From Macrostomum lignano (Eukaryota): a stretch of 64,000 nt of DNA. Below the pieces are notes generated by a model. The model did no database searches. It saw only the letters and a list, made by a program, of their open reading frames with translations, and had not been told where the DNA came from. The stretch covers positions 124,001 to 188,000 of the forward strand of contig NIVC01001494.1 in assembly GCA_002269645.1 (NCBI GenBank), in the 5' to 3' direction. Below, one piece after another: positions 8,567 to 39,000 of this stretch (its first letter is position 1; each line of letters begins with the position of its first letter). A program made the position numbers and the translations under genes.

Positions 8567-8682
8567 CAAAGTCACGCGCAGCGGCTGAGCTCGGATCGCC
8601 AGTGACATCGTAGGTCAAGAGAGCCGCAGACCGGGCGCAACTCGCTGATCACTGAGTGAGGGAAGTCGGATCGCATTTTATA
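8567..8682 (-). promoter_or_regulatory. TATA+Inr core promoter and short non-coding first exon, probably of the Rh gene
   Basis: Minus strand: TATAAAA at 8682-8676, Inr-like TCAGT with its A at 8653 (29 nt after the first T of the TATA box), and a perfect donor G|GTAAGT after 8567. The first Rh coding exon has an acceptor (tttttaccgcag) ending at 4175. Confidence 0.55.
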
Positions 8683-9297
8683 ATCAGTTCGGACTCGAAG
8701 GTGGAAAATCCCCCCCCCCCAATTCCCCAAGGTGCACATCGGCAATATTCGAATTCGATTGCCCTGTTCCACCTTGGCTGGGCGAGGCCCCGCACTCCGC
8801 TCTAAGTGCTTAGTCTGGTTGCCGGGGGCGGTGGGAGGGCGGAACTCGCCTGCCAGCAGCTGCACGGGCTGAGTGCTCTGCTGCTGCTTTAGCCTTGGCT
8901 GAGCTGATCCCAGATGAGGCGGAGATGGAGGCTGGGTAATGCGGGAAGGGGCTGCAACTCGACCCCGCAGCAGCGGCAGCAGCAATTTTGCGCCTGAAGA
9001 CCTCAGAGACGCGCGAGTGATCGGGACGGGGGGTCACCCGCTTGCCAGGCAGCTTGATGAGGCTTCATCTCGCGCCCAGACTCCTTCCCTACGCCCTGGC
9101 TCACCTTGGCACGCCATGCTTGTCACGGCGGCTTTTTGATACTCAATGCCACTTCGGGCTGCCCGGGCATCGCGTGACGCCCCGGCTTCTCCGGGAGACG
9201 CTCGGCTGGCAGCCCCCCCCCCACCCAGATTTTACCGAGCCTGCCTGTCTTTCAGTTGCGCCACTTTCTGCAGCCCTGGCTTGCCTTCTGAAGCTCG

Positions 9298-10052
9298 CTT
9301 GAGGGAATCTTGCTTGAGGGAATCTTGCTTGAGGGAATCTTGCTTGAGGGAATCTTGCTTGAGGGAATCTTGTTTCAGGGAATCTTGCTTGAGGGAATCT
9401 TGTTTTAGGGAATCTTGCTTGAGGGAATCTTGTTTCAGGGAATCTTGCTTGAGGGAATCTTGCTTAAGGGAATCTTGCTTGAGGGAATCTTGTTTGAGGG
9501 AATCTTGCTTGAGGGAATCTTGTTTCAGGGAATCTTGCTTGAGGGAATCTTGTTTGAGGGAATCTTGCTTGAGGGAATCTTGTTTCAGGGAATCTTGCTT
9601 GAGGGAATCTTGCTAGAGGGAATCTTGCTTAAGGGAATCTTGCTTAAGGGAATCTTGCTTGAGGGAATCTTGTTTCAGGGAATCTTGCTTGAGGGAATCT
9701 TGCTTAAGGGAATCTTGCTTGAGGGAATCTTGCTTGAGGGAATCTTGTTTCAGGGAATCTTGCTTGAGGGAATCTTGCTTGAGGGAATCTTGCTTGAGGG
9801 AATCTTGCTTGAGGGAATCTTGCTTAAGGGAATCTTGCTTGAGGGAATCTTGTTTCAGGGAATCTTGCATGAGGGAATCTTGCTTGAGGGAATCTTGCTT
9901 GAAAAAATCTTTATCAGGAATCTTCTTGAGGAAATCTTCAAGGGAATCATGCTTGAGGGAATCTTGCTTGAGGGAATCTTGCTTGAAAAAATCTTTATCA
10001 GGAATCTTCTTGAGGAAATCTTCAAGGGAATCATGCTTGAGGGAATCTTCTT
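9298..10052. repeat. 15-bp minisatellite GAGGGAATCTTGCTT
   Basis: About 50 copies, degenerating at the right end. Confidence 0.96.
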
Positions 10053-10063
10053 AAGAAAATCTA

Positions 10064-10342
<279 letters not shown>

Positions 10343-11019
10343 GAACTGGTGGGCCATGAGCAGCGCAGGGATGGACAGAGGAGGGGCGCGCATTCAAATC
10401 GATTTATTCGCAACGCACAGGACGGAATCTGCAGGGTCAGAGAGCGCAGTTGAGCAGAGGGGGGGGGTTCTGCTCGAATTCCCCCGGCTGAGATCGAAGA
10501 TTAATTTGGCTTCGACGGCCGGGCGACCGGGAGGCGCGAGGCCCGGAACGGGAAACTTCTTTGACTTCTGGCCTCCCCTCTCGGCCCTCTCCGAACAGGA
10601 AAGCCGGGCCTGCTGCGCACTCAGGCTCGAATTTCCGTCTCAAATCTGAGGTTCGATATTTACGGGTGTTGTGCACTTTTGAGTAGAGCAGCCTCTGCCC
10701 TGGAGACCGGTGGCTAGACGGAAGGACTCACTGAGGCTTTCCATCAGGGCAGCTTACGCTCGTATGACAGCTTAGTGATTGATTGATTGACAGCCTGGTG
10801 TCAGCTGCAATAGGAAAAATATTTAGAGTCGTCCGAAAGAAATTTGGGAAATTGTGACTGTATTGGTTCTCAACTATTCCCCCCGAAGACACGCCCTCTT
10901 CCTCGTGCTGAATGCCCCCCCCCGAAAAAATTCCTGGTTGGGTGCAACACTGGATCTTTGCACGCACGAAGCACCCCTATTTTTCTAGATCCTATCAGTG
11001 TACATAGTATTGACTCATT

Positions 11020-21890: not shown

Positions 21891-22424
21891 TCATCCCTTG
21901 GCCTGTGCGGCCAGCCACTCCAGGCCGGCCGTGAGGCCCTCGCCGCTCAGGGCGCAGCAGGCCTGAATGTGCCAGGGGTTGGCCCGGATGCTGGTGAGGT
22001 CCAGCGCCTGGCTGATCTCGGCCGCGGACAGCCGGCCGTTGATGTCCTGCTTGTTGGCGAGCACGAGCAGCCGCGCCCGCTTCAGGTGGTCCGAGGCGAG
22101 CATCTTGTACAGCTCGTCCTTGATGACGGCCAGCCGCTGCCTGTCGGAGGAGTCGATGACGAGGATGATGAAGTCGGTGCTCTGGTAGTAGGTCTCCCAC
22201 GTGGCCCGGATGGAGGTCTGGCCGCCCAGGTCCCACATCACGAAGTGGATGTTGCGCCAGCGCAGCTGCTCCACGTTGGAGCCGATGGTAGGCGAGGTGT
22301 GCACGGCCTCGCCCAGCACCAGCTGGTACAGCACGGTGGTCTTGCCGGCATTGTCCAGCCCGACCAGCAGTACTTTGTGCTCTTGGGTACCAAAAAGGCT
22401 CCACAGCCTGGCTATTATCAGCCC
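21891..22424 (-). CDS. ARL5: ADP-ribosylation factor-like protein 5 (small GTPase); initiator Met not encoded locally
   Basis: Contains GLDNAGKT (G1), [14 protein letters not shown] (G3), NKQD (G4) and [14 protein letters not shown], typical of ARL5. The coding sequence starts at Gly2 (GGG, 22424) directly after the acceptor ccaacttgcag. The ORF-track start is a TTG inside that acceptor. Confidence 0.95.
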
Positions 22425-24823
22425 CTGCAAGTTGGCGAGTGCCGTGATTTACTGATAGGCTTCAACTGAACTCGAATTAACAACCAGGTAGGATCCTGGG
22501 ATTGGGGTCCTACTTGACCCTTATTCAATACAAGGCTGGATGAGACAAGGAATTAGGCAGGCAGTCAAGATGGAATTGAAAGTTTCATGCTTGCATATCG
22601 AACTATTTGACAACAGGGAATAATCTGGTCTGTTCTTGCCACATTCTCTCAAACAAACCACATGCTAAGAGTTCACCTTCGACCTGCTGAATCATCTTGG
22701 GACCAGTCTGGTTCAGTATAAGCTGTGGTCCATTTCTCTTCTACTCCCTTGGGTGTGGGATGAGAGATGCTAATGCCAGACCTGGGGAGTTGCAGCTCTC
22801 TACAAAAGTACATGTTTTTTGTTATATGGATATATAAGCTTGTAGACAGGACATACAAATACATATATGGCTTTGGGAATGCATATTGCCTATATCTAAT
22901 TAGTAATATTTGCCAATCAACAACAGAATTAATTTAGACTTATTAAAAGATCATTGGAGCCCTTGATTTAATTGGTAAGAAGGGGGGGGTAAAACAGAAG
23001 AAATAAATTAATTTTGCCCATTTCAAAGCTTTTGTAAAGCAGAGGGAACTATCAAATTCTTAGGTTAGGGACTCAAGCAATAGAGATCTTCTAAGCAATT
23101 GAGGCTAAAGTTGAGATAAATTCAATCCTAGCCATTCTTATAATATTAATAAATAATAATTTACAATATTACACTTGCCTTAATGGCCAGATGTGCAACC
23201 AACAGCTTAGCTATAGCTATTATGCAATTATGAAAAGTTATAGGAAATTAATTAGCTATAGATATAAACATAAGTAAAGAATAAGAAAATGTATAAACTG
23301 CTATAGATATAGATACAAGAAAGTTTTTGTTATGGTTGAGCTCTTGCTTGTTGGATAAGTTCACAATATATAAAATTTTATTTTTGACAAAAAATCTAAT
23401 ATATAGTATTGTATATTAAAAATAATTATTAACAATATATTATTACCTATAACTTAAAAGCTATCATCTATTGGAATAAAAAATATTTTAGGACATAAAG
23501 GAATCTTAATAGCCAAAGTTAGTGATATAATTATTGAATGAAATAAGAAAATCATGCTAAAAAATAGAAAAAAGAAAGAACTCATGATGAACTTATGAAA
23601 AGAAAGAGAAAAGATTGTCTATAAATGAAAGATTGAAAAAATATACATTAAAAGACCTTTCTTTTGCTGATTTGTTTTTTTCATATACTAAAAATGGTTT
23701 ATCAATAGTGAATAGGTATCTATGCATACATGCCCAACCTCAAAATTTCACCTGTCCGATGCAACTTAGTTTTATCTAGATTAGTTAGTTCCTCCTAATT
23801 GCAACTTAGTTCTTCTTGATTGCAACTCAGTTACCCCAATTGCAACTTAATTTTCAATTTGTATGATTTTCCTTGCCTTTTTTCTTTTCTTCTTTTTCTC
23901 TTTTCTTTTCTCTCTCTCCTCTCTCCTTTCTTTTCTTTTTCTCTTTCTCTCCTTCATTCTTTTCCCAATTTTTTCAATTTTCGCTTTTTTGATTTTGCAA
24001 CTTACCTTGGCTAATGTTCCCAAAGATGTTCCCAAATCAGTACATGTATTTTTATTAAGCTCTAGCTCATTGCTAATAAATGGATGAAATATTATGCTAG
24101 CTAAGACATCAGAAATTATGCTTTTTTATAGTTGATATAGCCCATAATAGTAATAATTTTATACTTTTCTACTATGCTAGGCCTAGGGCTAAAAAAGGTC
24201 TACATTTTATTTTACTAATTAGCAGATAATCAATGTTTAATAGGTTTTAAAATTGTTAGACCTTTAACTTAAATAAGATAAATAGCATAGTAACTAAGTA
24301 AGCTGTAGTAGTAGGTAGGCTGTAGTAGGCCAGTGCAGGCAAAAATAGGCCCACCTAATAGTAATAGAATGGATATTGGATAAGATAAAATTGAATGGTT
24401 TAAATTGAACCAACAAAAGTTAAGAGTAAGACAAAGTGCTGACAAGCAAAAAGAAATATACAGAATAGAGAGTACTCGTATATATATACTAACGTAACCC
24501 ACTTTTATAGCAGGAACTAAACTAAAAAGACTAACACTAGTCGCCTACCTTGACTGAGATTAAATTAAGCAAATAAAGACCAACCCTACCTCCTATACAT
24601 AGTGATGGTGTGACGTACTTGCCTATATTTGGAAGATTATTCGGCCTATTTTTTAGCACTTATTATCACACTTAAAATTATTTTGAGATTTACTGAAACA
24701 ATTAAACTCAAATAGTTAAATTCGTTGAAATACCATATTGAGTTTCTTTACTTTTGTTTTTTTACACTATTCTGCCATTTTAATTTTAGATTTTACACGA
24801 AACAAACGTGAACAATAATGCCA

Positions 24824-25241
24824 GTAAAGTGTAAAAAGTTACACACCCAGTTTTTTTGGGGAAAACGTTACCTTCAAATTGCGTTCAAAGAGCACAATGA
24901 AATTGAAAATAATATTGTATTTTGATTTCGTTTGTCTAGTTCAAATTAAAATTGCAAGTTAGAAGCTTATAGAATGGGTAAAATAAATCACAAGAGCATT
25001 TTTATTTTTTCATTGGGTAAGCGTGTGTAAACCCTGGGTAATTTCAGGTACGTTTTTGGGGTAATGTCTTACCCAGCAATTAAACACTCATTTATTGGCC
25101 TCATCATCTATATTTTATGAATAATTATTCTATGATTTATGCTGCATAGGCGATAGCAAGTTATTTTCAATTTCATTGCGCTCTTTGAATGCAATTTGAA
25201 GGTAACGTTTTCGGGTAACTGGGTAACTTTTTACACTTTAC
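24824..25241. mobile_element. MITE-like element with about 85-bp terminal inverted repeats
   Basis: 24824-24912 (GTAAAGTGTAAAAAGTTAC...GAAAACGTTACCTTCAAATTGCGTTCAAAGAGCACAATGAAATTGAAAATAA) is the near reverse complement of 25161-25241. No clear TSD. Confidence 0.7.
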
Positions 25242-25454
25242 CATAAAGCTTGAACTGCAGAGCAAACATCTGCAGATAGCAAGCATCCCCAGATATTGTT
25301 GAAGCATCCACCCAGATAGCAAGCATCTTCCGAGATAGCAAGCATCCCCCAGATATTGTTGAAGCATCTACCCAGATATAAAAAATCCTGCAGATAGCAA
25401 GAATCCCTAAATTGCAAGCATCCCTGGATAGAAAGAATCCGATACATGTAGCCT

Positions 25455-25780
25455 AGCTTATCAAGTGCAATAATCCTTTGTTTGCCAATGCAGTTAATCC
25501 TTGGTTTATCAAGCGCAGTAATCCTTGGTTATCAAGTGCAGAAATCCTTGGTTTATTAAGTGCAGTAATCCTTGGTTTATCAAGTGCAGTAATCCATGGT
25601 TTATCAAGTGCAGAAATCCTTGGTTTATCAAGTGTAGTAATCTTTGGTTTATCAAGTGCAATAATCCTTGGTTTATCAAGTGCAGTAATCCTTGGTTTAT
25701 CAAGTGCAGTAATCCTTGGTTTATCAAATGCAGTAATCCTTGATATATCAAGTGCAGTAATCCTTGGTTTATTAAGTGAA
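25455..25780. repeat. 24-bp minisatellite TAATCCTTGGTTTATCAAGTGCAG
   Basis: About 13 diverged copies. Confidence 0.92.
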
Positions 25781-25823
25781 TGAAAAGAAAATTTCACTAC
25801 TTTTATATACTTTATATACACTA

Positions 25824-25887
25824 CTAAGATTTGAACCTAGGTCGCTGCATTAGTAGTCCAGTATGTTCAGCTCTAGGCTAGCTCTCA
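25824..25887 (-). mobile_element. Decayed tRNA-derived SINE head or tRNA pseudogene
   Basis: The minus strand reads TAGCCTAGAG (A-box-like)...CTGGACTACTAATGCAG (anticodon-arm-like)...GGTTCAAATC (B box) with tRNA-like spacing. The acceptor stem is not intact. Confidence 0.4.
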
Positions 25888-27990
25888 TTGAAGTTAAATG
25901 AATTTGTAGCTCATATAAATCAACACTCACACAAAGTCAGGTAGAGTAAAAGTCACATGAAGCAGTTATGATATAATTAATTTCTTAGGCAGTCAGTATC
26001 AGTGTCTATACTAACAATATGGTTAGGCAATATAAATCAAGTACTGTGCTATGCTTCTACACTCAACACTAATGCAATTCAACTAGTATACAGACAATAA
26101 ATAAAAAGCCTATTGTGATGCAATCTATTTCAGAATCAGAATTCAACCAGTCAGTTTTTTTCTTAGCATTCTTATGATGCATTTAAAGTTGAAAGAGCTG
26201 CTTGACCTTTGCAAAAAGCATGTTTTTCAAATATTTAATCCCTTTAGCATCAAGCAATTTCTTAGCAACATTGCAAGTACTGTCATGGAAAAATTTCTGA
26301 TTGAACAGTGCATGTTCAAAGAAAATTGGCTTAGCCATTTTTGCTAAAACTGATCACATACTTACCTAGATAGATAGATACCTACCAACAGACCATTTTT
26401 AGTATATAGAAAATGTTATTCTTAAAAAAGTGGCAATTTTTTTCTAGTTCTTTTAATTAAAGCATGTTTAAAGCATTATATGGCATTTTTTTGTTTTACA
26501 ATACTTGCACTTTGTGTCAATTTTGTTATATAATACCCATTGGAAATTAGTGAGAATTGAAATAGATGTAGCTTTGATTGCAAAAATGTTTCAATCATAG
26601 CTTGCTAGCACACAATCCTTATATTCACTTTCATTATACAATGCCCTTAATGGAGAATTTGTTAAGAATGCATTGTAAAATGAAAGTGAGGAGGTATAGA
26701 AGCAAAAATAAGGGAGAATATTAAGAATTGGATATAGCCATGAAGAATCTTACAATTTTAGCTTATTAGTGCACAATCCTTATATTCACTTTCATTATAG
26801 GCCTACGATGCCCTCAATAGAGAATTTGTTAAGAATACATTGTAAAATGAAAGTGAGGGGGATATAGCAAATAAATGAAAGACTGAAAAGAAATGGGTAT
26901 GACTGTTAACAAATTATCCCTTATTTTCATTTTTATCCCCCTCACTTTTGTTTTAGAATGCATTCTTAATAAAGTCTTATATATTGGTCTATCTATCAAA
27001 TTGCAGCCATTTGTTGTCTTGGTATCTATTTTCTTAATTAACTAGTATTTCTAAAGCTGCTAAAAATTATCATTGATTTTAAATGAGTGACCAATAGTAC
27101 AAAATTATATTTACACTACTATAAAAGTACAACATAATATTGGTTAAGAATTATTTCTATACATACTTCTGAAGAGTCAGAATCAACATTTGAAAATTGA
27201 CCTTCCATTTTTTGCAAATTGCAAGTGTAGTGTCCTGATATATTGCTAATCCTTGTTTTGTAAAAGGTTTTGTTTATTCACTCAAATTTTGGATGCAATA
27301 ATAAAAATATTATATTGCATCTTTATTTGAGGAATAACAGCATGTTTATCTATAGACCAACACATTTTTTGTTTTTTTTTCTACAAAGACATTTAATCAC
27401 TCTTTAATTGGTGGTTCCTTAAAATTAGAAAGGATAGGTAGTAGATAAAGGATAATGGATAATAGTAAAAGATAGGTAAGTACTAGATAACACTGTATAT
27501 TAGTAGCAATTTTAGTGTATATAAGTCACACTTTGGAAGATTTTGAAAGATTGGAAAATTGTATTTTGTCATTTGAACTAGAAATGATCAAATAGATTTA
27601 CATCCTGGCTATGTAGATCTACATGCAGGTTAAGTTAGATTTATCTAACAAAAATTGTGCAAATCATTATAATATATGTATAAAATGTATATATAGATTG
27701 TATATTGATATATTGCCATGATAAAACTGGTTTCTTTATATACTTTAGCCAAATTTAATAATAGTAAGAGGCTCACAAAGTCATTTTTCAATTCTAAGCA
27801 CATCTATAAAAGTATAAGGGATTATGTTATTTAACCCTCACAATAATTTTGAGAAATTAGTCTAGTTGCACATATGCAGTTGGTTACTAGGCCCATTTGC
27901 CTATGGGTTAAATATGAGATTTGTCTATTTGTTTTAACTAAAGACAAAGTTATTAACTAATATAGTCTATTGTGGCTTTTGCGCCCGCAG

Positions 27991-29822
27991 CACCGCCTGT
28001 GGTGCACTGGCTTAGTGCGCCATCTCTGGCGGCGCCGCAGGCGGCAGGCAGCCATTGTGACTGCTGCTGCCACCGCCCTGCTGGCGCTCCTGCTGCTGGC
28101 CAGCGCCTTGCTCAGCAGGCCGCTGCCGCCGCCCTTCCAGCTGGAATCCGCAAGCACCGCCATAGCCGTCGAATCTATTGACCTGTTCGACTCTCGCCGC
28201 GATGTCATCGTGCTGCTGCACATGCAGAAGACCGGCGGCTCGCACCTGAACCGCCAGCTCGTCTCCGGCTTGCGCCGACCCGACATGCGCTGCCAGTGCG
28301 GCCGCGGCGGCCTCGGCGGTGCGCGTCGGCGGAAATGGCGCTGCAACTGCCGCAACAGCCGCGGCGACCTGTGGCTGGTGAGCCGCTACAGCACCGGCTG
28401 GCTCTGCGGCCTCCACGCCGACTTCGCCGCGCTGTCTGCCTGCGTGCCCGGCCAGCTGGCCGCGCTCGACTCCGACTTTGAGAGGCCGCGCCGCCTCCGC
28501 TACGTCACCATGCTGCGCCGGCCGGCCGACCGCTTCCTGTCCGAGTGGCAGCACGCGCGCCGCGGTGCCACCTGGCGGAAATCGCAGCCCACCTGCCGCG
28601 GCAGCCGGCCTCCGCCCTGCCGGACTGGCGACGGCGCCTGGCGCGGCGTCTCCCTGGCCGAGTTCGCCGCCTGCCGCGCCAACCCGGCGCTGAACCGGCA
28701 GGCGCGCATGCTGGCCAACACCAGCGGCCTGCCCTGCCGGGCCGTCTTCGCCAACGGGAATCGAACCGCAGACCTACTGCTGGCCAGCGCGCTTCACAAT
28801 CTGGTAGGGATGGCGGCGTTCGGCCTGACTGAGTGGCAGGTGAGCGAGCGGCTGGGAAGCTGGGACTTTTATGGAGTTGAGGATCTGGGATATCTGATGG
28901 AGTTGAGGATCTGGGAAATTTGATGGAGTTGAGGATTTGGGATATCTGATGGAGTTGAGGATCCGGGATATCTGAGGGAGTTGAGGATCTGGGATATCTG
29001 ATGGAGTTGAGGATCTGGGATATCTGAGGGAATTGAGGATCTGGGATATCTGATGGAGTTGAGGATCTGGGATATCTGAGGGAATTGAGGATCTGGGATG
29101 TCTGATGGAGTTGAGGATCTGGGATATCTGAGGGAATTGAGGATCTGGGATGTCTGATGGAGTTGAGGATCTGGGATATCTGAGGGAATTGAGGATCTGG
29201 GATGTCTGATGGAGTTGAGGATCTGGGATATCTGAGGGAATTGAGGATCTGGGATGTCTGATGGAGTTGAGGATCTGGGATATCTGAGGGAGCTGTAAAG
29301 ACTCTTCATGCGGGTTTCCCGTTGTCACGCGGATGTCACTCTACCCCAAGCACCACTCTCGGACCCGCGCAGATCCTGACGCAATACCTGCTGAGCAGGC
29401 GCCTCGGCCTGAGCTTCAGCCGCCTGTTCTGGCAGCAGGACGCCACCGTCGCCTCTAATTGGCGCGCCAGCGGCAACTTCAGCCTCGTCGCCGACGCCGG
29501 CGACCTCCAGCAGAGGCGACTGGCGGAGCTCGCCAACCCCGCCGACGCCCGCCTGTACGCAGCGGCCGAGCGGCTGTTCTTCGGCCAGGCCCGCCGCCTG
29601 CTGGCTCGGGAGCCGCTGCTGTCGGTCGGCCAGCGGGCTCGAGTCCGGGACGCCGACTCCGCAATCGGCGGCGACGCACTGACCGCGCTGGCCCGCCGGG
29701 TGCTGCTGGAGCTGGGCGCCGTTGAAGTGGACGACGCCGAGAAGGCGGACATCCGGCGCCGGGTGCGCAAGAAGCTCCTGCGGGCTGGCAACGACGAGGC
29801 CGAGTCGGATTCGAACTCGTGA
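27991..29822 (+). CDS. HS6ST: Heparan sulfate 6-O-sulfotransferase (type II Golgi membrane protein)
   Basis: Exons 27991-28839 and 29373-29822 (GT-AG, phase 0). Motifs DVIVLLHMQKTGG (5'-PSB), SRYSTGWLCGLHAD, YVTMLRRPADRFLSEWQHARRGATW, NRQARMLA and AFGLTEWQ|ILTQYL. A basic tail precedes the TM segment. There is no in-frame ATG before the TM; an acceptor gcgcccgcag ends at 27990. Confidence 0.93.
28872..29290. repeat. 26-bp minisatellite GGAGTTGAGGATCTGGGATATCTGAT in the HS6ST intron
   Basis: About 16 copies. Confidence 0.95.
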
Positions 29823-33019: not shown

Positions 33020-36000
33020 CTAACTGTAATCAATGTAGCCCTTCTCTCGCCCTGTCGGCGACGCCGTGGTCGGCGGCTGCTTCTCCTTCGGCTTGCGGAT
33101 CAGCAGGCCGTTGCGGTCGGTCCTGGGGATGATGCCACCCCGGTGGGCGTGGGGCCGCGGCGCCTCCCGGCTCACCGTGCGGTACACGGCGTGGAAGCCC
33201 TTGAAGCTGATCGTGTCGTCGCTGCGGAACCGGATGTGCAGACTCTGCCTGGAGGAGTAGATCGGCCCGTCCGGACCCTGGGGCGCGCGGATGGAGGGCA
33301 AAATTTCATGGTGAATTAATTGCATTTCGGCAGATTTTATTGAAGAAATACAAACTGGGGAACACCTTGCGGGGGAATCCGTACTGGGGAACACCTTGCA
33401 TGGGAATCCGTACTAGGGAACACCTTGCGGGGGACTCCGTTCTGGGGAACACCTGACGGGGAATCCGTACTGGGAAACACTTGACGGGAAATCCGTACTG
33501 GGGAACACCTTGCGGAGGAATCCGTGCTGGGGAACACCTTGTAGGGAATCCGTTCTGAGGAACACCTGACGGGGAATCCGTACTGGGGAACACCTTGCGG
33601 AGGAATCCGTGCGGGGGAACACCTTTAGGGAATCCCTACTGGGGAACACCTTGCAGAGAATCCCTACTTAGGGGACACCTTGTGGGAATCCGTACTGGGG
33701 AACACCTTGCAGAGAATCCCTACTTAGGGGACACCTTGTGGGAATCCGTACTGGGGAACACCTTGCAGGGGAATCCGTACTGGGGAATACCTTGCAGGGG
33801 AATCCCTACTGGGGAAAACCTCGCGAGGAATCCGTATTGGGGAACACCTGACGGCGGTAAGGATTGCAGGTGGATACCTTGTAAATCCTCTGCAATGGCA
33901 TATTTTGACGAGTCCCTACTGGGATTAATCTCTCTATGGAATATTTCGAGAATCCTTACTGAGGAATAACTACCAATATTTGGAATTATCCCTTTAACGG
34001 AGAAAAACTTTCTTTATGGTAATCACTCTAATGGGAATCCATGCAGGGACTAACTACCCCGTATGCTAAAGCTCAATTTAGCGGAAACAGAGTTCGAACC
34101 ACAGACGCTGACGCACCTTCCTCTCCCGCAGGTTGCCGCAGTAGCGGCCCAGCAACACACCTCTGTCGTTGTCGTCATCGAAGATGTCCACGTAGTCGTA
34201 GCTGCGGGTTGGCCGGAGCGGCGGGGAAGGGAGTGAGTTCCCCCAATCCCAATCTGGGAAAAAACTTCCACGCTTTCGAGATCAGAACGCGGCCAACTCA
34301 CCCGCACTCGATTTCGCTCTCCAGCTCAAATGTCTCCATGTTGAGCACGATCACCTCCTCGGGATTGGAGGTGGTGAGGGTCCAGTTGCAGTTCTCCCTG
34401 GTCCCGTAGTCCTTGTCCCCGAAGCCGGCGTGGCTGTAGAAGCTCGCGTTCGCGGACGAGGCGATCAGCTGCCCGCCGCAGACTGTTGAGTGACAGGTGT
34501 GGGTGGGGGGCCCTGACTTTCTAATCGGGGTCAGGCAATCGCCTGTACACACTGCCGTAAGGTGTTTAGACCTCTAAATATGAGAAATTGCTAGAACGCT
34601 ACTTATAGTAGTTTATCCAAACTGCGCTCCTCACTGGACGAGTGATCCGCATTGAAGCCCTTCCGCTGCAGCGAGGAGTCGCTGACGAAGCCCACAAACA
34701 TCGAGTTGCCGGTGCTGATCACCGGAGTCGGCGGCATCGCGTCGCCGCAGAAGACTCCGATTCGCTCCGAGGTGGCGTCGGGACCGTCGCGGATCTCCAC
34801 GTGGTCGTAGGCGCAGTCTGGATGGCGCTCGATTTCAAAGTGCTTGAACACCTGGGGGTGGGAGGAGGGGATCTCGAAGTGCTTGAACACCTGGGGGTGG
34901 GAGGAGGGGATCTCGAAGTGCTTGAACACCTGGGGGTGGGAGGAGGGGATCTCGAAGTGCTTGAACACCTGGGGGTGGGAGGAGGGGATCTCGAAGTGCT
35001 TGAACACCTGGGGGTGGGAGGAGGGGATCTCGAAGTGCTTGAACACCTGGGGGTAGGAGGAGAGGATCTCGAAGGACTTGTAACTGCGATCCCCAGCTCC
35101 CTACTCAGAGTAGCCACGCTCTGCTCATACCAGTTTGATGCGGTGCCCCGGCGTGGTGAGGAAGTTCCAGCTGCACCGCTTTTCCAGCGGGTACCTGCGG
35201 GGATAGTTGGGGCTGGAGAACTCGCCGCTCAGCCGGGTAATTCGGTGCTTGCAGCCGCCCTCCTTGCACTGGTGGTTGCCGTACAGCACGTAGCCGCTGT
35301 GGCAGGCGCACACGTAGGAGCCGATGGTGTTCTTGCACAGCTGGTCGCAGCCGCCGTTCATCATGGCGCACTCGTCCCGGTCCACCATGAAGCTGGCCGA
35401 GAACCCGCCCTTGGACACCTGCGGGGCGGAGGCGGGTCCACGGGTGAATGGGGCGGATGGAGTGGGTGCGGAGGAGTGGGAAGAGCGGCGAATGGAGAGG
35501 GAGGCGGATGGAGTGGAGACAGGGGCGGATGGAGAAGGGGCGGATGGAGTGAAGACAGGGGCGGATGGAGAAGGGGGCGGATGGAGTGAAGACAGGGGCG
35601 GATGGAGTAGGGAGAGGGGCGGATGGAGTGAAGACAGGGGCGGATGGAGAAGGGGGCGGATGGAGTGAAGACAGGGGCGGATGGAGTAGGGAGAGGGGCG
35701 GATGGAGTGAAGACAGGGGCGGATGGAGTGAAGACAGGGGCGGATGGAGAAGGGGGTGGATGGAGTGAAGACAGGGGCGGATGGAGTAGGGAGAGGGGTG
35801 GATGGAGTGAAGACAGGGGCGGATGGAGTAGGGAGAGGGGCGGATGGAGTAGCGAGAGGGGCGGATGGAGTGAAGACAGGGGCGGATGGAGAAGGGGGCG
35901 GATGGAGTGAAGACAGGGGCGGATGGAGAAGGGGGCGGATGGAGTGAAGACAGGGGCGGATGGAGAAGGGGGCGGATGGAGTGAAGACAAGGGCGGATGG

Positions 36001-39000
36001 AGTAGGGAGAGGGGCGGATGGAGTGAAGACAGGGGCGGATGGAGAAGGGGGTGGATGGAGTGAAGACAGGGGCGGATGGAGTAGGGAGAGGGGTGGATGG
36101 AGTGAAGACAGGGGCGGATGGAGTAGGGAGAGGGGCGGATGGAGTAGGGAGAGGGGTGGATGGAGTGAAGACAGGGGCGGATGGAGTAGGGAGAGGGGCG
36201 GATGGAGTAGGGAGAGGGGCGGATGCAGTGGGGAGATGGGCGGATGCAGTGGGGAGATGGGCGGATGCAGTGGGGAGAGGGGGTAGAGGGGGTGGAATGC
36301 GGTCGGTTGAAGTAGTTGATAAGGGAAAAGTTGTGCACTAATCAAGCATAAACACAAGAACAATTCAGTTAAACAAATGAATATTTTAGATAAACACAAG
36401 AGCATGTGTTTATATGCAGGTGCAGAGAATAAACGCAAGCATCTTCGCGAGCTCACAGTGCCGTCAGAGATGAAGCTGATCTTCATCGTATTATTCTCTG
36501 AGGTAATGGACTCGGGAGGCTGGTCGCCGCAGTATCTGCCGACTCGTTTCGAGGTGGCCTCGTCGACACCGTCGAAGATGTCCAGGTAGTCGTATTCGCA
36601 CCTCTGCGGGCCGGCGATGGATTAATGAGAGCAGGTGCGTCACGTGACCGGAGCTCGGTGGCCGGGCAGGGGATGATATTAATGAGAGCAGGTGCGTCAC
36701 GTGACCGGAGCTCGGTGCCCGGGCAGGGGATGAGATTAATGAGAGCAGGTGCGTCACGTGACCGGAGCTCGGTGCCCGGGCAGGGGATGAGATTAATGAG
36801 AGCAGGTGCGTCACGTGACCGGAGCTCGGTGGCCGGGCAGGGGATGAGATTAATGAGAGCAGGTGCGTCACGTGACCGGAGCTCGGTGCCCGGGCAGGGG
36901 ATGAGATTAATGAGAGCAGGTGCGTCACGTGACCGGAGCTCGGTGGCCGGGCAGGGGATGAGATTAATGAGAGCAGGTGCGTCACGTGACCGGAGCTCGG
37001 TGGCCGGGCAGGGGATGAGATTAATGAGAGCAGGTGCGTCACGTGACCGGAGCTCGGTGCCCGGGCAGGGGATGAGATTAATGAGAGCAGGTGCGTCACG
37101 TGACCGGAGCTCGGTGCCCGGGCAGGGGATGAGATTAATGAGAGCAGGTGCGTCACGTGACCGGAGCTCGGTGCCCGGGCAGGGGATGAGATTAATGAGA
37201 GCAGGTGCGTCACGTGACCGGAGCTCGGTGCCCGGGCAGGGGATGAGATTAATGAGAGCAGGTGCGTCACGTGACCGGAGCTCAGTGGCCAGGCCAAACT
37301 CACATCGCGTCCTTCGATATCAAAGGTGGTGAAATTGAGCAGAATCTTGTGCCCGATGGGGGCGATAATGTGCCACTTGCAGTGCTTGTTGGGCGGGTAC
37401 TTGTCCGGGTAAGAGGGCGATGTGACGGTGCCCCGCATGGCCACCAGGGTGCCTCCGCAGGTGTCTTCGCAGGTGCGACCGTCTCGGTGCAGGTGGAAGC
37501 CGGGCCGGCAGTCGCAGTGGTAGCCGCCCAGCGTGTTCACGCAGATGTGCTGGCACCCGTGCTGCTGCCCGCCGTGCAGCGCCATGCACTCATCGTACTC
37601 TGGGTGGGTAGGTTTGGTAGGCAGTGTAGGGTGAGACGGGTAGGGTGAGACGGGTAGGGTGAGACGGGTAGGATGTGCTGGGTAGGGTGAGTTGCGTAGG
37701 TTAAGTTGCGTAGGGTGAATTGGATAGGGTGAATTGGGTAGGGTGAGTTGCGTAGGTTGAGTTGCGTAGGGTGAATTGGGTAGGGTGAATTGGGTAGGGT
37801 GAATTGGGTAGGGTGAATTGGGTAGGGTGAATTGGGTAGGGTGACTCGGGTAAGGTGAGCTGAATATTGGTATGCTCACAATCATGGATTAAGCAGGGTT
37901 CGAACCCGGCCAGCTCACCCTTCTCGAAGGTGGCCGCAAAGCCTATCTTGTTGACGGAGTTGTCCGACTTGAACCGCACCGTCATCCGGTTGCCGGTGCT
38001 CTTCACCGGCTTCGGGACCGTCTCGCCGCAGAACTTGCCCAGCGATACGCCGTCCTGCGACCAGCCCTCCAGCACCTCTACGAAGTCGTACACGCACTGG
38101 GTGTGCGTCTCCAGCTGCGGGTGGGTCGATGAACTGCAGACCTGACCTGATCTCATCTTACCTTGACCCGATCTGACCTGACCTGACCTGACCTGACCTG
38201 ACCTGACCTGATCTGACCTGATCTGACCTGACCTGACCTGACCTGATCTGACCTGACCTGACCTGACCTGACCTGACCTGATCTGACCTGATCTGACCTG
38301 ATCTGACCTGATCTGACCTGACCCGACCTGACCTGACCTGACATGACCCGATCTGACCTGACATGACCTGATCTGACCTGACCTGATCTGACCTGACCTG
38401 ATCTGACCTGATCTGACCTGACCTAACCTGACCTAACCTGACCTGACCTGACCTGACCTGACCTGACTCAGAGGTTTATCAATCAGTGGTTAAATCGGGG
38501 TTCAGGCATGGAATTTTGGCTTGAGGCTCGTGCAATTCACCCTGTTAATAGGAGGAAGCAGGACGTTCCCATGCCCCATCCTCCCCCAGACTCACCTCAA
38601 AAGAGAAGAACTTGAGCGCCACTGAGTAGCCGTTGGGCACCTCAATCTTCCAAATGCACTCCTTGTCGCCGCGGTAGGCGCTGGGGTAGTTGGGGCTGGA
38701 GATCTGGCCCTCGTCACTGATTCGATAGCCGCCGCAGATGGCTGCTCGCGTTGGGAATGAAAATTGATCGATTGATTTATGATTGGCAAATCAGAATTCT
38801 GCCTGCAACCTTCGCCTCAAATGGAAAGATACTCGTATGAGCACCTACGAACTTTTTAAGCACAGCCTTTTTTGAGAGGACAGCAAAGAGATACCGCATC
38901 TTGTGACAATGTTTGCCGATTGCAATTCAAAATGAGTTGATTGTAACTGATAATGGCAGATTGCAATGATACACTGGCAGATTGCAATGATACACTGGCA

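Follow-up and report, generated by a model that had tools for sequence, protein, structure and literature searches.

The AUG that ends a flatworm spliced leader has been established experimentally as an initiator codon in Schistosoma mansoni (Cheng, Cohen, Ndegwa & Davis 2006, J Biol Chem 281:733; cited by PMC9851317 and PMC12582326); as that study is quoted there, the leader AUG lies in frame in 28% of the schistosome trans-spliced cDNAs and is required in > 40 of them. Macrostomum lignano, a free-living flatworm, possesses a single 35-nt spliced leader, CGGTCTCTTACTGCGAAGACTCAATTTATTGCATG, which also ends in ATG (PMC8629364), and 30-39% of its genes are trans-spliced (PMC8629364, PMC5730564), with [T/C]TNCAG as the enriched trans-splice acceptor motif and GT[G/A]AG as the donor motif (PMC8629364). 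Here we analyzed a stretch of 64,000 nucleotides of the M. lignano genome (assembly GCA_002269645.1, contig NIVC01001494.1, positions 124,001 to 188,000 of the forward strand; hereafter the window, numbered from its first letter), in which two head-to-head genes, coding for the Arf-like GTPase 5 (ARL5) and for a heparan-sulfate 6-O-sulfotransferase (HS6ST), both lack a start codon of their own and open in frame directly after a splice acceptor. We estimate at roughly 85% the probability that both take their start codon from the AUG of the trans-spliced leader; we are more confident of this for HS6ST, no leader-bearing ARL5 transcript having been retrieved.

The ARL5 coding sequence (21891..22424, minus strand) consists of one intronless exon running from the codon of Gly2 to the stop, i.e. 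177 codons plus TGA, without a genomic start codon. Read along the minus strand, its 5' border is ...caacttgcag/GGG CTG ATA ATA GCC AGG CTG TGG (slashes denote splice borders throughout), where the first G of GGG is position 22424, and the putative trans-splice acceptor TTGCAG (22425..22430, minus strand), located directly 5' of the Gly2 codon, fits [T/C]TNCAG. No in-frame ATG is found in the eight codons back to the TAA at 22451-22449, and the first internal Met is residue 63, past the P-loop. The product, which terminates in ...AQAKG, matches the Pfam Arf family with E=1.3e-64 and has ARL5A/B as its best named matches (63-67% identity). When it is aligned with nine ARL5 proteins (flatworms, insects, amphioxus, a cnidarian and a sponge), residue 1 falls on the invariant Gly2, just the Met being absent, and its P-loop (GLDNAGKT) and NKQD motifs align with those of the other proteins. 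Judged from its Arf-family G domain, its nearest relatives ARL5A/B and the presence of Gly2, the protein can thus be assigned to ARL5. In Arf-family proteins, removal of the Met followed by myristoylation of Gly2 is the established route, and the N-terminus GLIIAR fits the pattern G-{EDRKHPFYW}-x(2)-[STAGCN]-{P}, the N-myristoylation pattern of PROSITE (PS00008), as does the GVALAK of the paralog described below.

HS6ST lies on the plus strand, where ...gcgcccgcag/CAC CGC CTG TGG opens the frame at 27991, directly downstream of the putative trans-splice acceptor CCGCAG (27985..27990, plus strand), whose orthologous junction with the leader is seen in an RNA contig presented below. Exon 1 (27991..28839) comprises 283 codons and encodes an Arg-rich cytoplasmic tail, a signal anchor, the PAPS-binding QKTGGS and most of the catalytic domain, again without a genomic start codon; it is followed by a 533-nt intron (28840..29372, gtgagc...cgcag) and by exon 2 (29373..29822), with 149 codons plus TGA, yielding a product of 432 residues. 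There is no in-frame ATG in the ten codons upstream of exon 1 back to the TAA at 27958, and no in-frame Met occurs before residue 78, which lies beyond the membrane anchor. The strongest hydrophobic segment spans about residues 20-41, after an RRRRR run. Over residues 64-356 the protein aligns with the structure 5T03 of zebrafish HS6ST3 (E=2.2e-53); it carries the 5'-PSB motif (LLHMQKTGGS, with the PAPS-binding QKTGGS) and recovered flatworm HS6ST homologs, so that its sequence identifies it as an HS6ST, predicted to be a type II protein with an N-terminal signal anchor. Most of its sole intron is made of a 26-nt tandem repeat in 16 copies (ATGGAGTTGAGGATCTGGGATATCTG, 28871-29292).

Reading from the upstream stop codons into the exons (22424 to 21891 for ARL5, 27991-28839 for HS6ST) bears out the anatomy described in the initial annotation, namely an ARL5 that opens at Gly2 after ttgcag with no local ATG and an HS6ST that opens in frame after cccgcag with no in-frame ATG before its anchor. 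Its further proposal, that Met1 comes from the leader, presupposed a flatworm and was to fall if the organism had no AUG-terminated leader; the DNA is from M. lignano, whose published 35-nt leader ends in ATG. This proposal is now supported for both genes by deposited 5'-partial models that start at the acceptor, for HS6ST by a leader junction in a congener, and for ARL5 by the acceptor of a paralog and by Gly2.

Trans-splicing at the orthologous HS6ST acceptor is directly evidenced in a related species. The RNA contig SRR28338166_20342 (L004), a 1550-nt Logan assembly contig from a related Macrostomum-like species, bears an HS6ST ortholog with 74% identity, the closest non-lignano sequence. 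Its 5' end reads CAATTTATTGCATG/CACCGCCTGCGGTGC... (the part after the junction is also written /CACCGCCTGCGG and /CACCGCCTG), with the ATG in frame; its first 14 nt are the exact 3' end of the M. lignano leader, and homology to the genome begins exactly at the HS6ST acceptor. The 533-nt intron has been removed in L004, which is therefore a spliced mRNA. The leader 14-mer is present neither in the window nor in the 20 kb around each M. lignano copy of the locus, and an Rfam scan combined with a search for the leader sequence found no leader RNA gene in the window. Codon 23 of L004 (nt 78-80), just before the anchor, is an in-frame ATG, and its counterpart in M. lignano is ATT (window 28057-28059); the related species has a fallback HS6ST start codon and M. 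lignano is without one.

The annotated 5' ends of the M. lignano copies are the next line of evidence. An identical ARL5 protein, also 177 aa from the Gly, is encoded on NIVC01000636.1 and NIVC01000637.1 (GCA_002269645.1, Mlig_3_7), and the window shares 98% identity with NIVC01000637 over 8.5 kb around both genes, by which we consider it another homeologous or allelic copy of the locus on that contig. On the homeologous copy NIVC01000636, the HS6ST acceptor is CTGCAG, a full fit to [T/C]TNCAG. The GenBank HS6ST model BOX15_Mlig029954g2 (429 aa, HRLWCTG...) is flagged 'partial', as are the models of the three copies of a second ARL5 gene (Mlig003408g1, Mlig001563g1 and Mlig024902g1), and the model of the ARL5 type found in the window has the same form as these 'partial' models, with 177 aa from Gly2. 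At four of the five loci read, covering three gene families, the model starts at the base following the AG. The other genes in these loci begin with an ordinary ATG. In the pipeline used for Mlig_3_7 (TBONE), 5' ends were set from peaks of leader-containing reads after trimming of the leader (PMC5730564), and a 5'-partial open reading frame (ORF) can be called only where the 5' end of the transcript falls between the acceptor and the nearby in-frame upstream stop. The locus tags of these genes have no match in the supplementary tables of two studies on M. lignano. Two models, Mlig024902g1 (176 aa) and the HS6ST model of the homeologous sequence L002, are each one residue shorter at the N-terminus than their sister copies, perhaps owing to the way the leader was trimmed or the reads were mapped. 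An older automated model of the same HS6ST gene, the M. lignano entry A0A1I8I7P... of UniProt, is in the wrong frame across the acceptor (SFVAIAPAAPPVVHWLSAPS...).

The second ARL5 gene of M. lignano (L003, positions 10001-10534) shows the same arrangement. It shares 70% protein identity with the ARL5 of the window, keeps all G-box motifs and is likewise intronless, and its border, ...aattttcag/GGT GTA GCC, places an acceptor (TTTCAG, fitting [T/C]TNCAG) exactly at the Gly2 codon. The four-fold degenerate sites of the two paralogs are 26% identical, i.e. saturated, and the absence of an ATG, being common to both, is probably an old state. The ARL5 orthologs of Fasciola hepatica and Taenia crassiceps are 178 aa long, start with MG and are 60-65% identical to that of M. 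lignano, but they possess introns and a genomic ATG directly before GGC (gttATGGGC and ttcATGGGC), whereas the M. lignano genes are intronless and have no ATG; since the parasite genes encode the ATG and contain introns, the ATG-less, intronless form is derived in the Macrostomum lineage. We favour, with moderate confidence, the broader view that in this lineage ARL5 has long relied entirely on trans-splicing for its start codon, the leader-encoded Met being used only to initiate translation and then removed. If true, ARL5 would be a natural, conserved reporter of leader-AUG initiation, and the loss of a genomic start codon under an AUG-ending leader could be fixed in essential genes over the long term. 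The codon composition of the paralogs differs widely, with a GC content at third codon positions (GC3) of 0.92 in the window and 0.46 in L003, which suggests very different local mutational or gene-conversion regimes. Beside the ARL5 paralog, a metallophosphatase gene begins with ...ctttcag/cacaATG (L003 19935-19951); this ctttcag is a candidate trans-splice acceptor lying four bases ahead of a genomic ATG, in which case the leader AUG would come shortly before the true start and be off-frame by one base.

From the observed anatomy, leader, annotated 5' ends and congener junction, we infer the following course of events. The outron would be cut off the pre-mRNA by leader trans-splicing at the AG ending at 22425 for ARL5 (minus strand) and at 27990 for HS6ST, and the leader end ...UUGCAUG (...TTATTGCATG) would be joined to GGGCTGATAATAGCC (ARL5) or CACCGCCTGTGGTGC (HS6ST), giving AUG/GGG CUG... 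and AUG/CAC CGC.... ARL5 would then be translated from the leader AUG as MGLIIAR..., lose its Met and be N-myristoylated on Gly2, so that no leader-encoded residue would be left in the mature protein. HS6ST would start from the leader AUG as MHRLWCTGLVRHLWRRRRRQ, followed by the signal anchor expected of a type II Golgi enzyme. Once the leader has been added, no AUG precedes the leader's own (nt 33-35) in either mRNA, and this AUG reads in frame into the entire protein; the AUGs that follow it lie out of frame, opening ORFs of 37 aa and 15 aa, and the next in-frame one would drop the P-loop of ARL5 (M63) or the anchor of HS6ST (M78). Neither mRNA would thus yield a functional protein without trans-splicing, which makes both genes dependent on the leader for their start codon. 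The case of ARL5 is indirect but consistent: its paralog has the acceptor at the same position, and only an added ATG would bring back Gly2 in an N-terminus of the myristoylation type.

Several observations weigh against this explanation. The context of the leader AUG is weak, with a U at -3, and the HS6ST acceptor of the window, CCGCAG, departs from [T/C]TNCAG at one position. The sole leader junction seen comes from another Macrostomum-like species and concerns HS6ST only; no M. lignano RNA read or contig with the leader joined to ARL5 or HS6ST was retrieved, and for ARL5 neither an exact look-up of Met-prefixed proteins, nor an N-terminal homology search, nor a look-up of the fragment starting at M63 returned a leader-bearing transcript. 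The codon-23 AUG of L004 implies that in the related species HS6ST does not depend strictly on the leader AUG. Lastly, the homeologous HS6ST model on L002 (4480-4483) starts one codon past the acceptor.

The start codon could alternatively be supplied by cis-splicing, with a short upstream exon, which ends in ATG or holds one in frame, spliced to the same acceptor and the annotated 5' ends being merely incomplete; in parasitic flatworms, acceptors are often common to cis- and trans-splicing (PMC12582326). The region between the two genes does contain ATG/GT strings, three on the ARL5 strand and six on the HS6ST strand, but these counts compare with 5.8 +/- 2.3 expected and none of the strings fits GT[G/A]AG, so that we rejected them as evidence for a cis exon. 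This applies to the two minus-strand exon ends that the initial annotation had put forward as an alternative for ARL5, ATG/gtattt (24734..24736) and ATG/gtaaag (25242..25244): both strings exist, yet they are matches at chance level. The former is off GT[G/A]AG, and the latter sits ~30 nt outside the arm 25161-25212 of a 52-nt inverted repeat (24861-24912 / 25161-25212), at the outer flank of whose other arm (24861-24912) the string GTAAAGTGTAAAAAGTTAC recurs, preceded by CCA instead of ATG. A perfect donor-like CAAG/GTAAGT located 1.6 kb upstream of ARL5 and recurring upstream of its paralog appears more favourable to cis-splicing, but it lies in an element with terminal inverted repeats that resembles a miniature inverted-repeat transposable element (MITE), with no open in-frame ATG upstream at either locus, and the idea of a conserved upstream ARL5 exon was accordingly discarded, the shared block being this MITE-like element. 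Besides, Gly2 of ARL5 would end up buried behind any extension added in frame at the N-terminus, the HS6ST mRNA of the congener bears the leader and not a cis exon, and four of the five models, from three gene families, stop exactly at the AG, the fifth doing so one codon after it. Taken together, we judge cis-splicing to be improbable.

Still less credit can be given to initiation without the leader AUG, either at a non-AUG codon near the 5' end (e.g. CUG, the third codon of HS6ST) or at the first AUG inside the coding sequence, resulting in proteins with an altered or truncated N-terminus. Non-AUG starts from spliced leaders have been reported in other taxa (PMC9851317) and the pyrimidine at -3 makes some leaky scanning conceivable, but a ribosome skipping the leader AUG would meet the out-of-frame AUG next and, at the following in-frame one, lose the P-loop or the signal anchor as described above. 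ARL5 moreover needs Met-Gly for myristoylation, and in two ancient paralogs the exon starts exactly at Gly2, a precision that makes sense only if the junction brings in an AUG. Least probable of all, in our view, is that these loci are unexpressed or decaying copies, such as processed ARL5 pseudogenes, whose ATG was lost by decay. The M. lignano genome is indeed polyploid and repeat-rich, and neither ARL5 paralog has an intron, against gene spans of 9.5 kb in Fasciola and 3.3 kb in Taenia; the reading frames, nevertheless, are intact in every copy, and the homeologous ARL5 coding sequences differ at four nucleotides, all four synonymous, leaving the protein identical in three copies, which argues against pseudogenes. 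Despite saturation of their synonymous sites, the paralogs still agree in 70% of the protein and in every G-box motif, the gene models derive from an annotation built on the transcriptome, no further ARL5 gene with its own ATG occurs among the M. lignano matches of the ARL5 search, and no leader remnant is visible upstream of the acceptors. The related idea that ARL5 is a retrogene derived from a leader-bearing mRNA, raised by the resemblance between TTGCAG and the TTGCATG of the leader, found no support: the leader aligned to the 45 nt upstream of four acceptors no better than to shuffled sequences (p = 0.46-0.82).

The spacer between the divergent genes (22425..27990) measures 5566 nt and has a GC content of 31%, with several tandem repeats (one being 24 nt x 13, at 25458-25778) as well as MITE-like elements formed by inverted repeats; the head-to-head coding sequences flanking it reach 65-72% GC, with a GC3 of ~0.9. 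It presumably holds both outrons and the promoter or promoters, although transcription start sites cannot be read from the DNA because outrons are removed by trans-splicing. A weaker extension of our proposal, already suggested in the initial annotation but reaching further than the evidence, is that the divergent ARL5 and HS6ST share a promoter region, from which two Golgi functions might be co-expressed through paired outrons. By convention, the divergent start sites of a bidirectional promoter pair are < 1 kb apart, and such genes should be co-regulated or keep their pairing; the coding starts of ARL5 and HS6ST are separated by 5566 nt with several repeats in between. At the locus of the ARL5 paralog, the neighbour 6 kb upstream lies on the same strand and there is no HS6ST pairing, and the HS6ST paralog, which has its own ATG, faces a Ras-like GTPase. 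A conserved ARL5-HS6ST head-to-head module was therefore not retained, since this neighbour of the HS6ST paralog, labelled 'Arf/Ras' by Pfam, belongs to the Ras-like GTPases (MSKSV...KIVVIGSGGVGKSALT) and has an ATG of its own. In Fasciola hepatica (L005 1-2806), ARL5B stands head to head with another gene of the Arf/Ras GTPase family, at a distance of ~200 nt.

The MITE-like repeat of the spacer (23725..24012, minus strand) contains a 21-nt minisatellite (ACTAAGTTGCAAT...) and is also present upstream of the ARL5 paralog, without being a conserved exon. BLAST comparison of the regions upstream of the two paralogs returned one block of 270 nt at 79% identity (window 24012-23725 / L003 8688-9093). 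In L003, the element (8632-9093) is bounded by a perfect 14-nt terminal inverted repeat (8632-8645 / 9080-9093) and its minisatellite is variable. Both paralogs have it in the same orientation, at a distance of 0.9-1.6 kb upstream, with a purine-rich run and, at its edge, the donor-like CAAG/GTAAGT. No further copy was found in the ~106 kb of M. lignano sequence examined, and the element is absent from 21.7 kb of another locus. Its presence upstream of both paralogs could be a coincidence, reflect a tendency to insert into 5' regions, or mean that the element was co-opted for regulation.

Elsewhere in the window (1-64000), tandem repeats are abundant, with 72 TRF rows at a score >= 200, periods mostly of 4-88 nt and for some up to 216, and <= 73 copies. 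Most of the other long ORFs have no Pfam match or a sub-threshold one, and many overlap minisatellites; these overlapping ORFs are probably repeat artefacts. Besides ARL5 and HS6ST, the only convincing protein-family matches belong to an EGF/CUB-domain gene: two long ORFs at 35125-37885 (minus strand) match calcium-binding EGF and CUB (CUB E=1e-12), and probably represent exons of a single EGF-CUB protein gene, with tandem repeats lying between them.

The mechanism proposed here has been known in flatworms since 2006, and the ARL5/HS6ST locus is a clean example of it, not a new phenomenon; the deposited annotation already reflects leader-AUG starts implicitly, and the known picture of flatworm trans-splicing is unchanged. 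What is added are two specific cases, one of them a GTPase predicted to be N-myristoylated, which in its mature form would no longer carry the leader-encoded Met. A leader ending in AUG lets genes lose their own start codon, and this locus illustrates how. Gene finders that require an ATG fail on such genes, as seen with the 'partial' flags in GenBank and the wrong-frame HS6ST model in UniProt. As M. lignano is a transgenic model, constructs based on ARL5 or HS6ST would need a leader acceptor or an added ATG; and because myristoyl-Gly2 is detectable by mass spectrometry, ARL5 offers a convenient endogenous test of leader-AUG initiation.

Compared with the leader-AUG mRNAs of Schistosoma, the two M. 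lignano genes share a leader ending in AUG, an acceptor placed before the second codon and the absence of a genomic in-frame AUG. They differ in that M. lignano is free-living and early-branching (Macrostomorpha), in that its 35-nt leader and the genes concerned are not the same, and in that the Met of ARL5 is presumably removed for myristoylation of Gly2, in a dependence that appears common to two ancient ARL5 paralogs. Within M. lignano, the locus resembles the trans-splicing described on Mlig_3_7 (Wudarski et al. 2017; Ustyantsev & Berezikov 2021), with acceptors that match or nearly match [T/C]TNCAG and gene 5' ends that coincide with the acceptor, and both ARL5 and HS6ST are conserved human-homologous genes, a class enriched among the trans-spliced genes of this species; the use of the leader AUG as the start codon of particular genes is not discussed in these two studies. 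As in the slORFs identified with slORFfinder (PMC9851317), the reading frame arises only once the leader has been added. Those slORFs, found in nematodes, Oikopleura and trypanosomes with ribosome footprints, mostly have non-AUG (NUG) starts, whereas here a canonical AUG would open two conserved housekeeping proteins.

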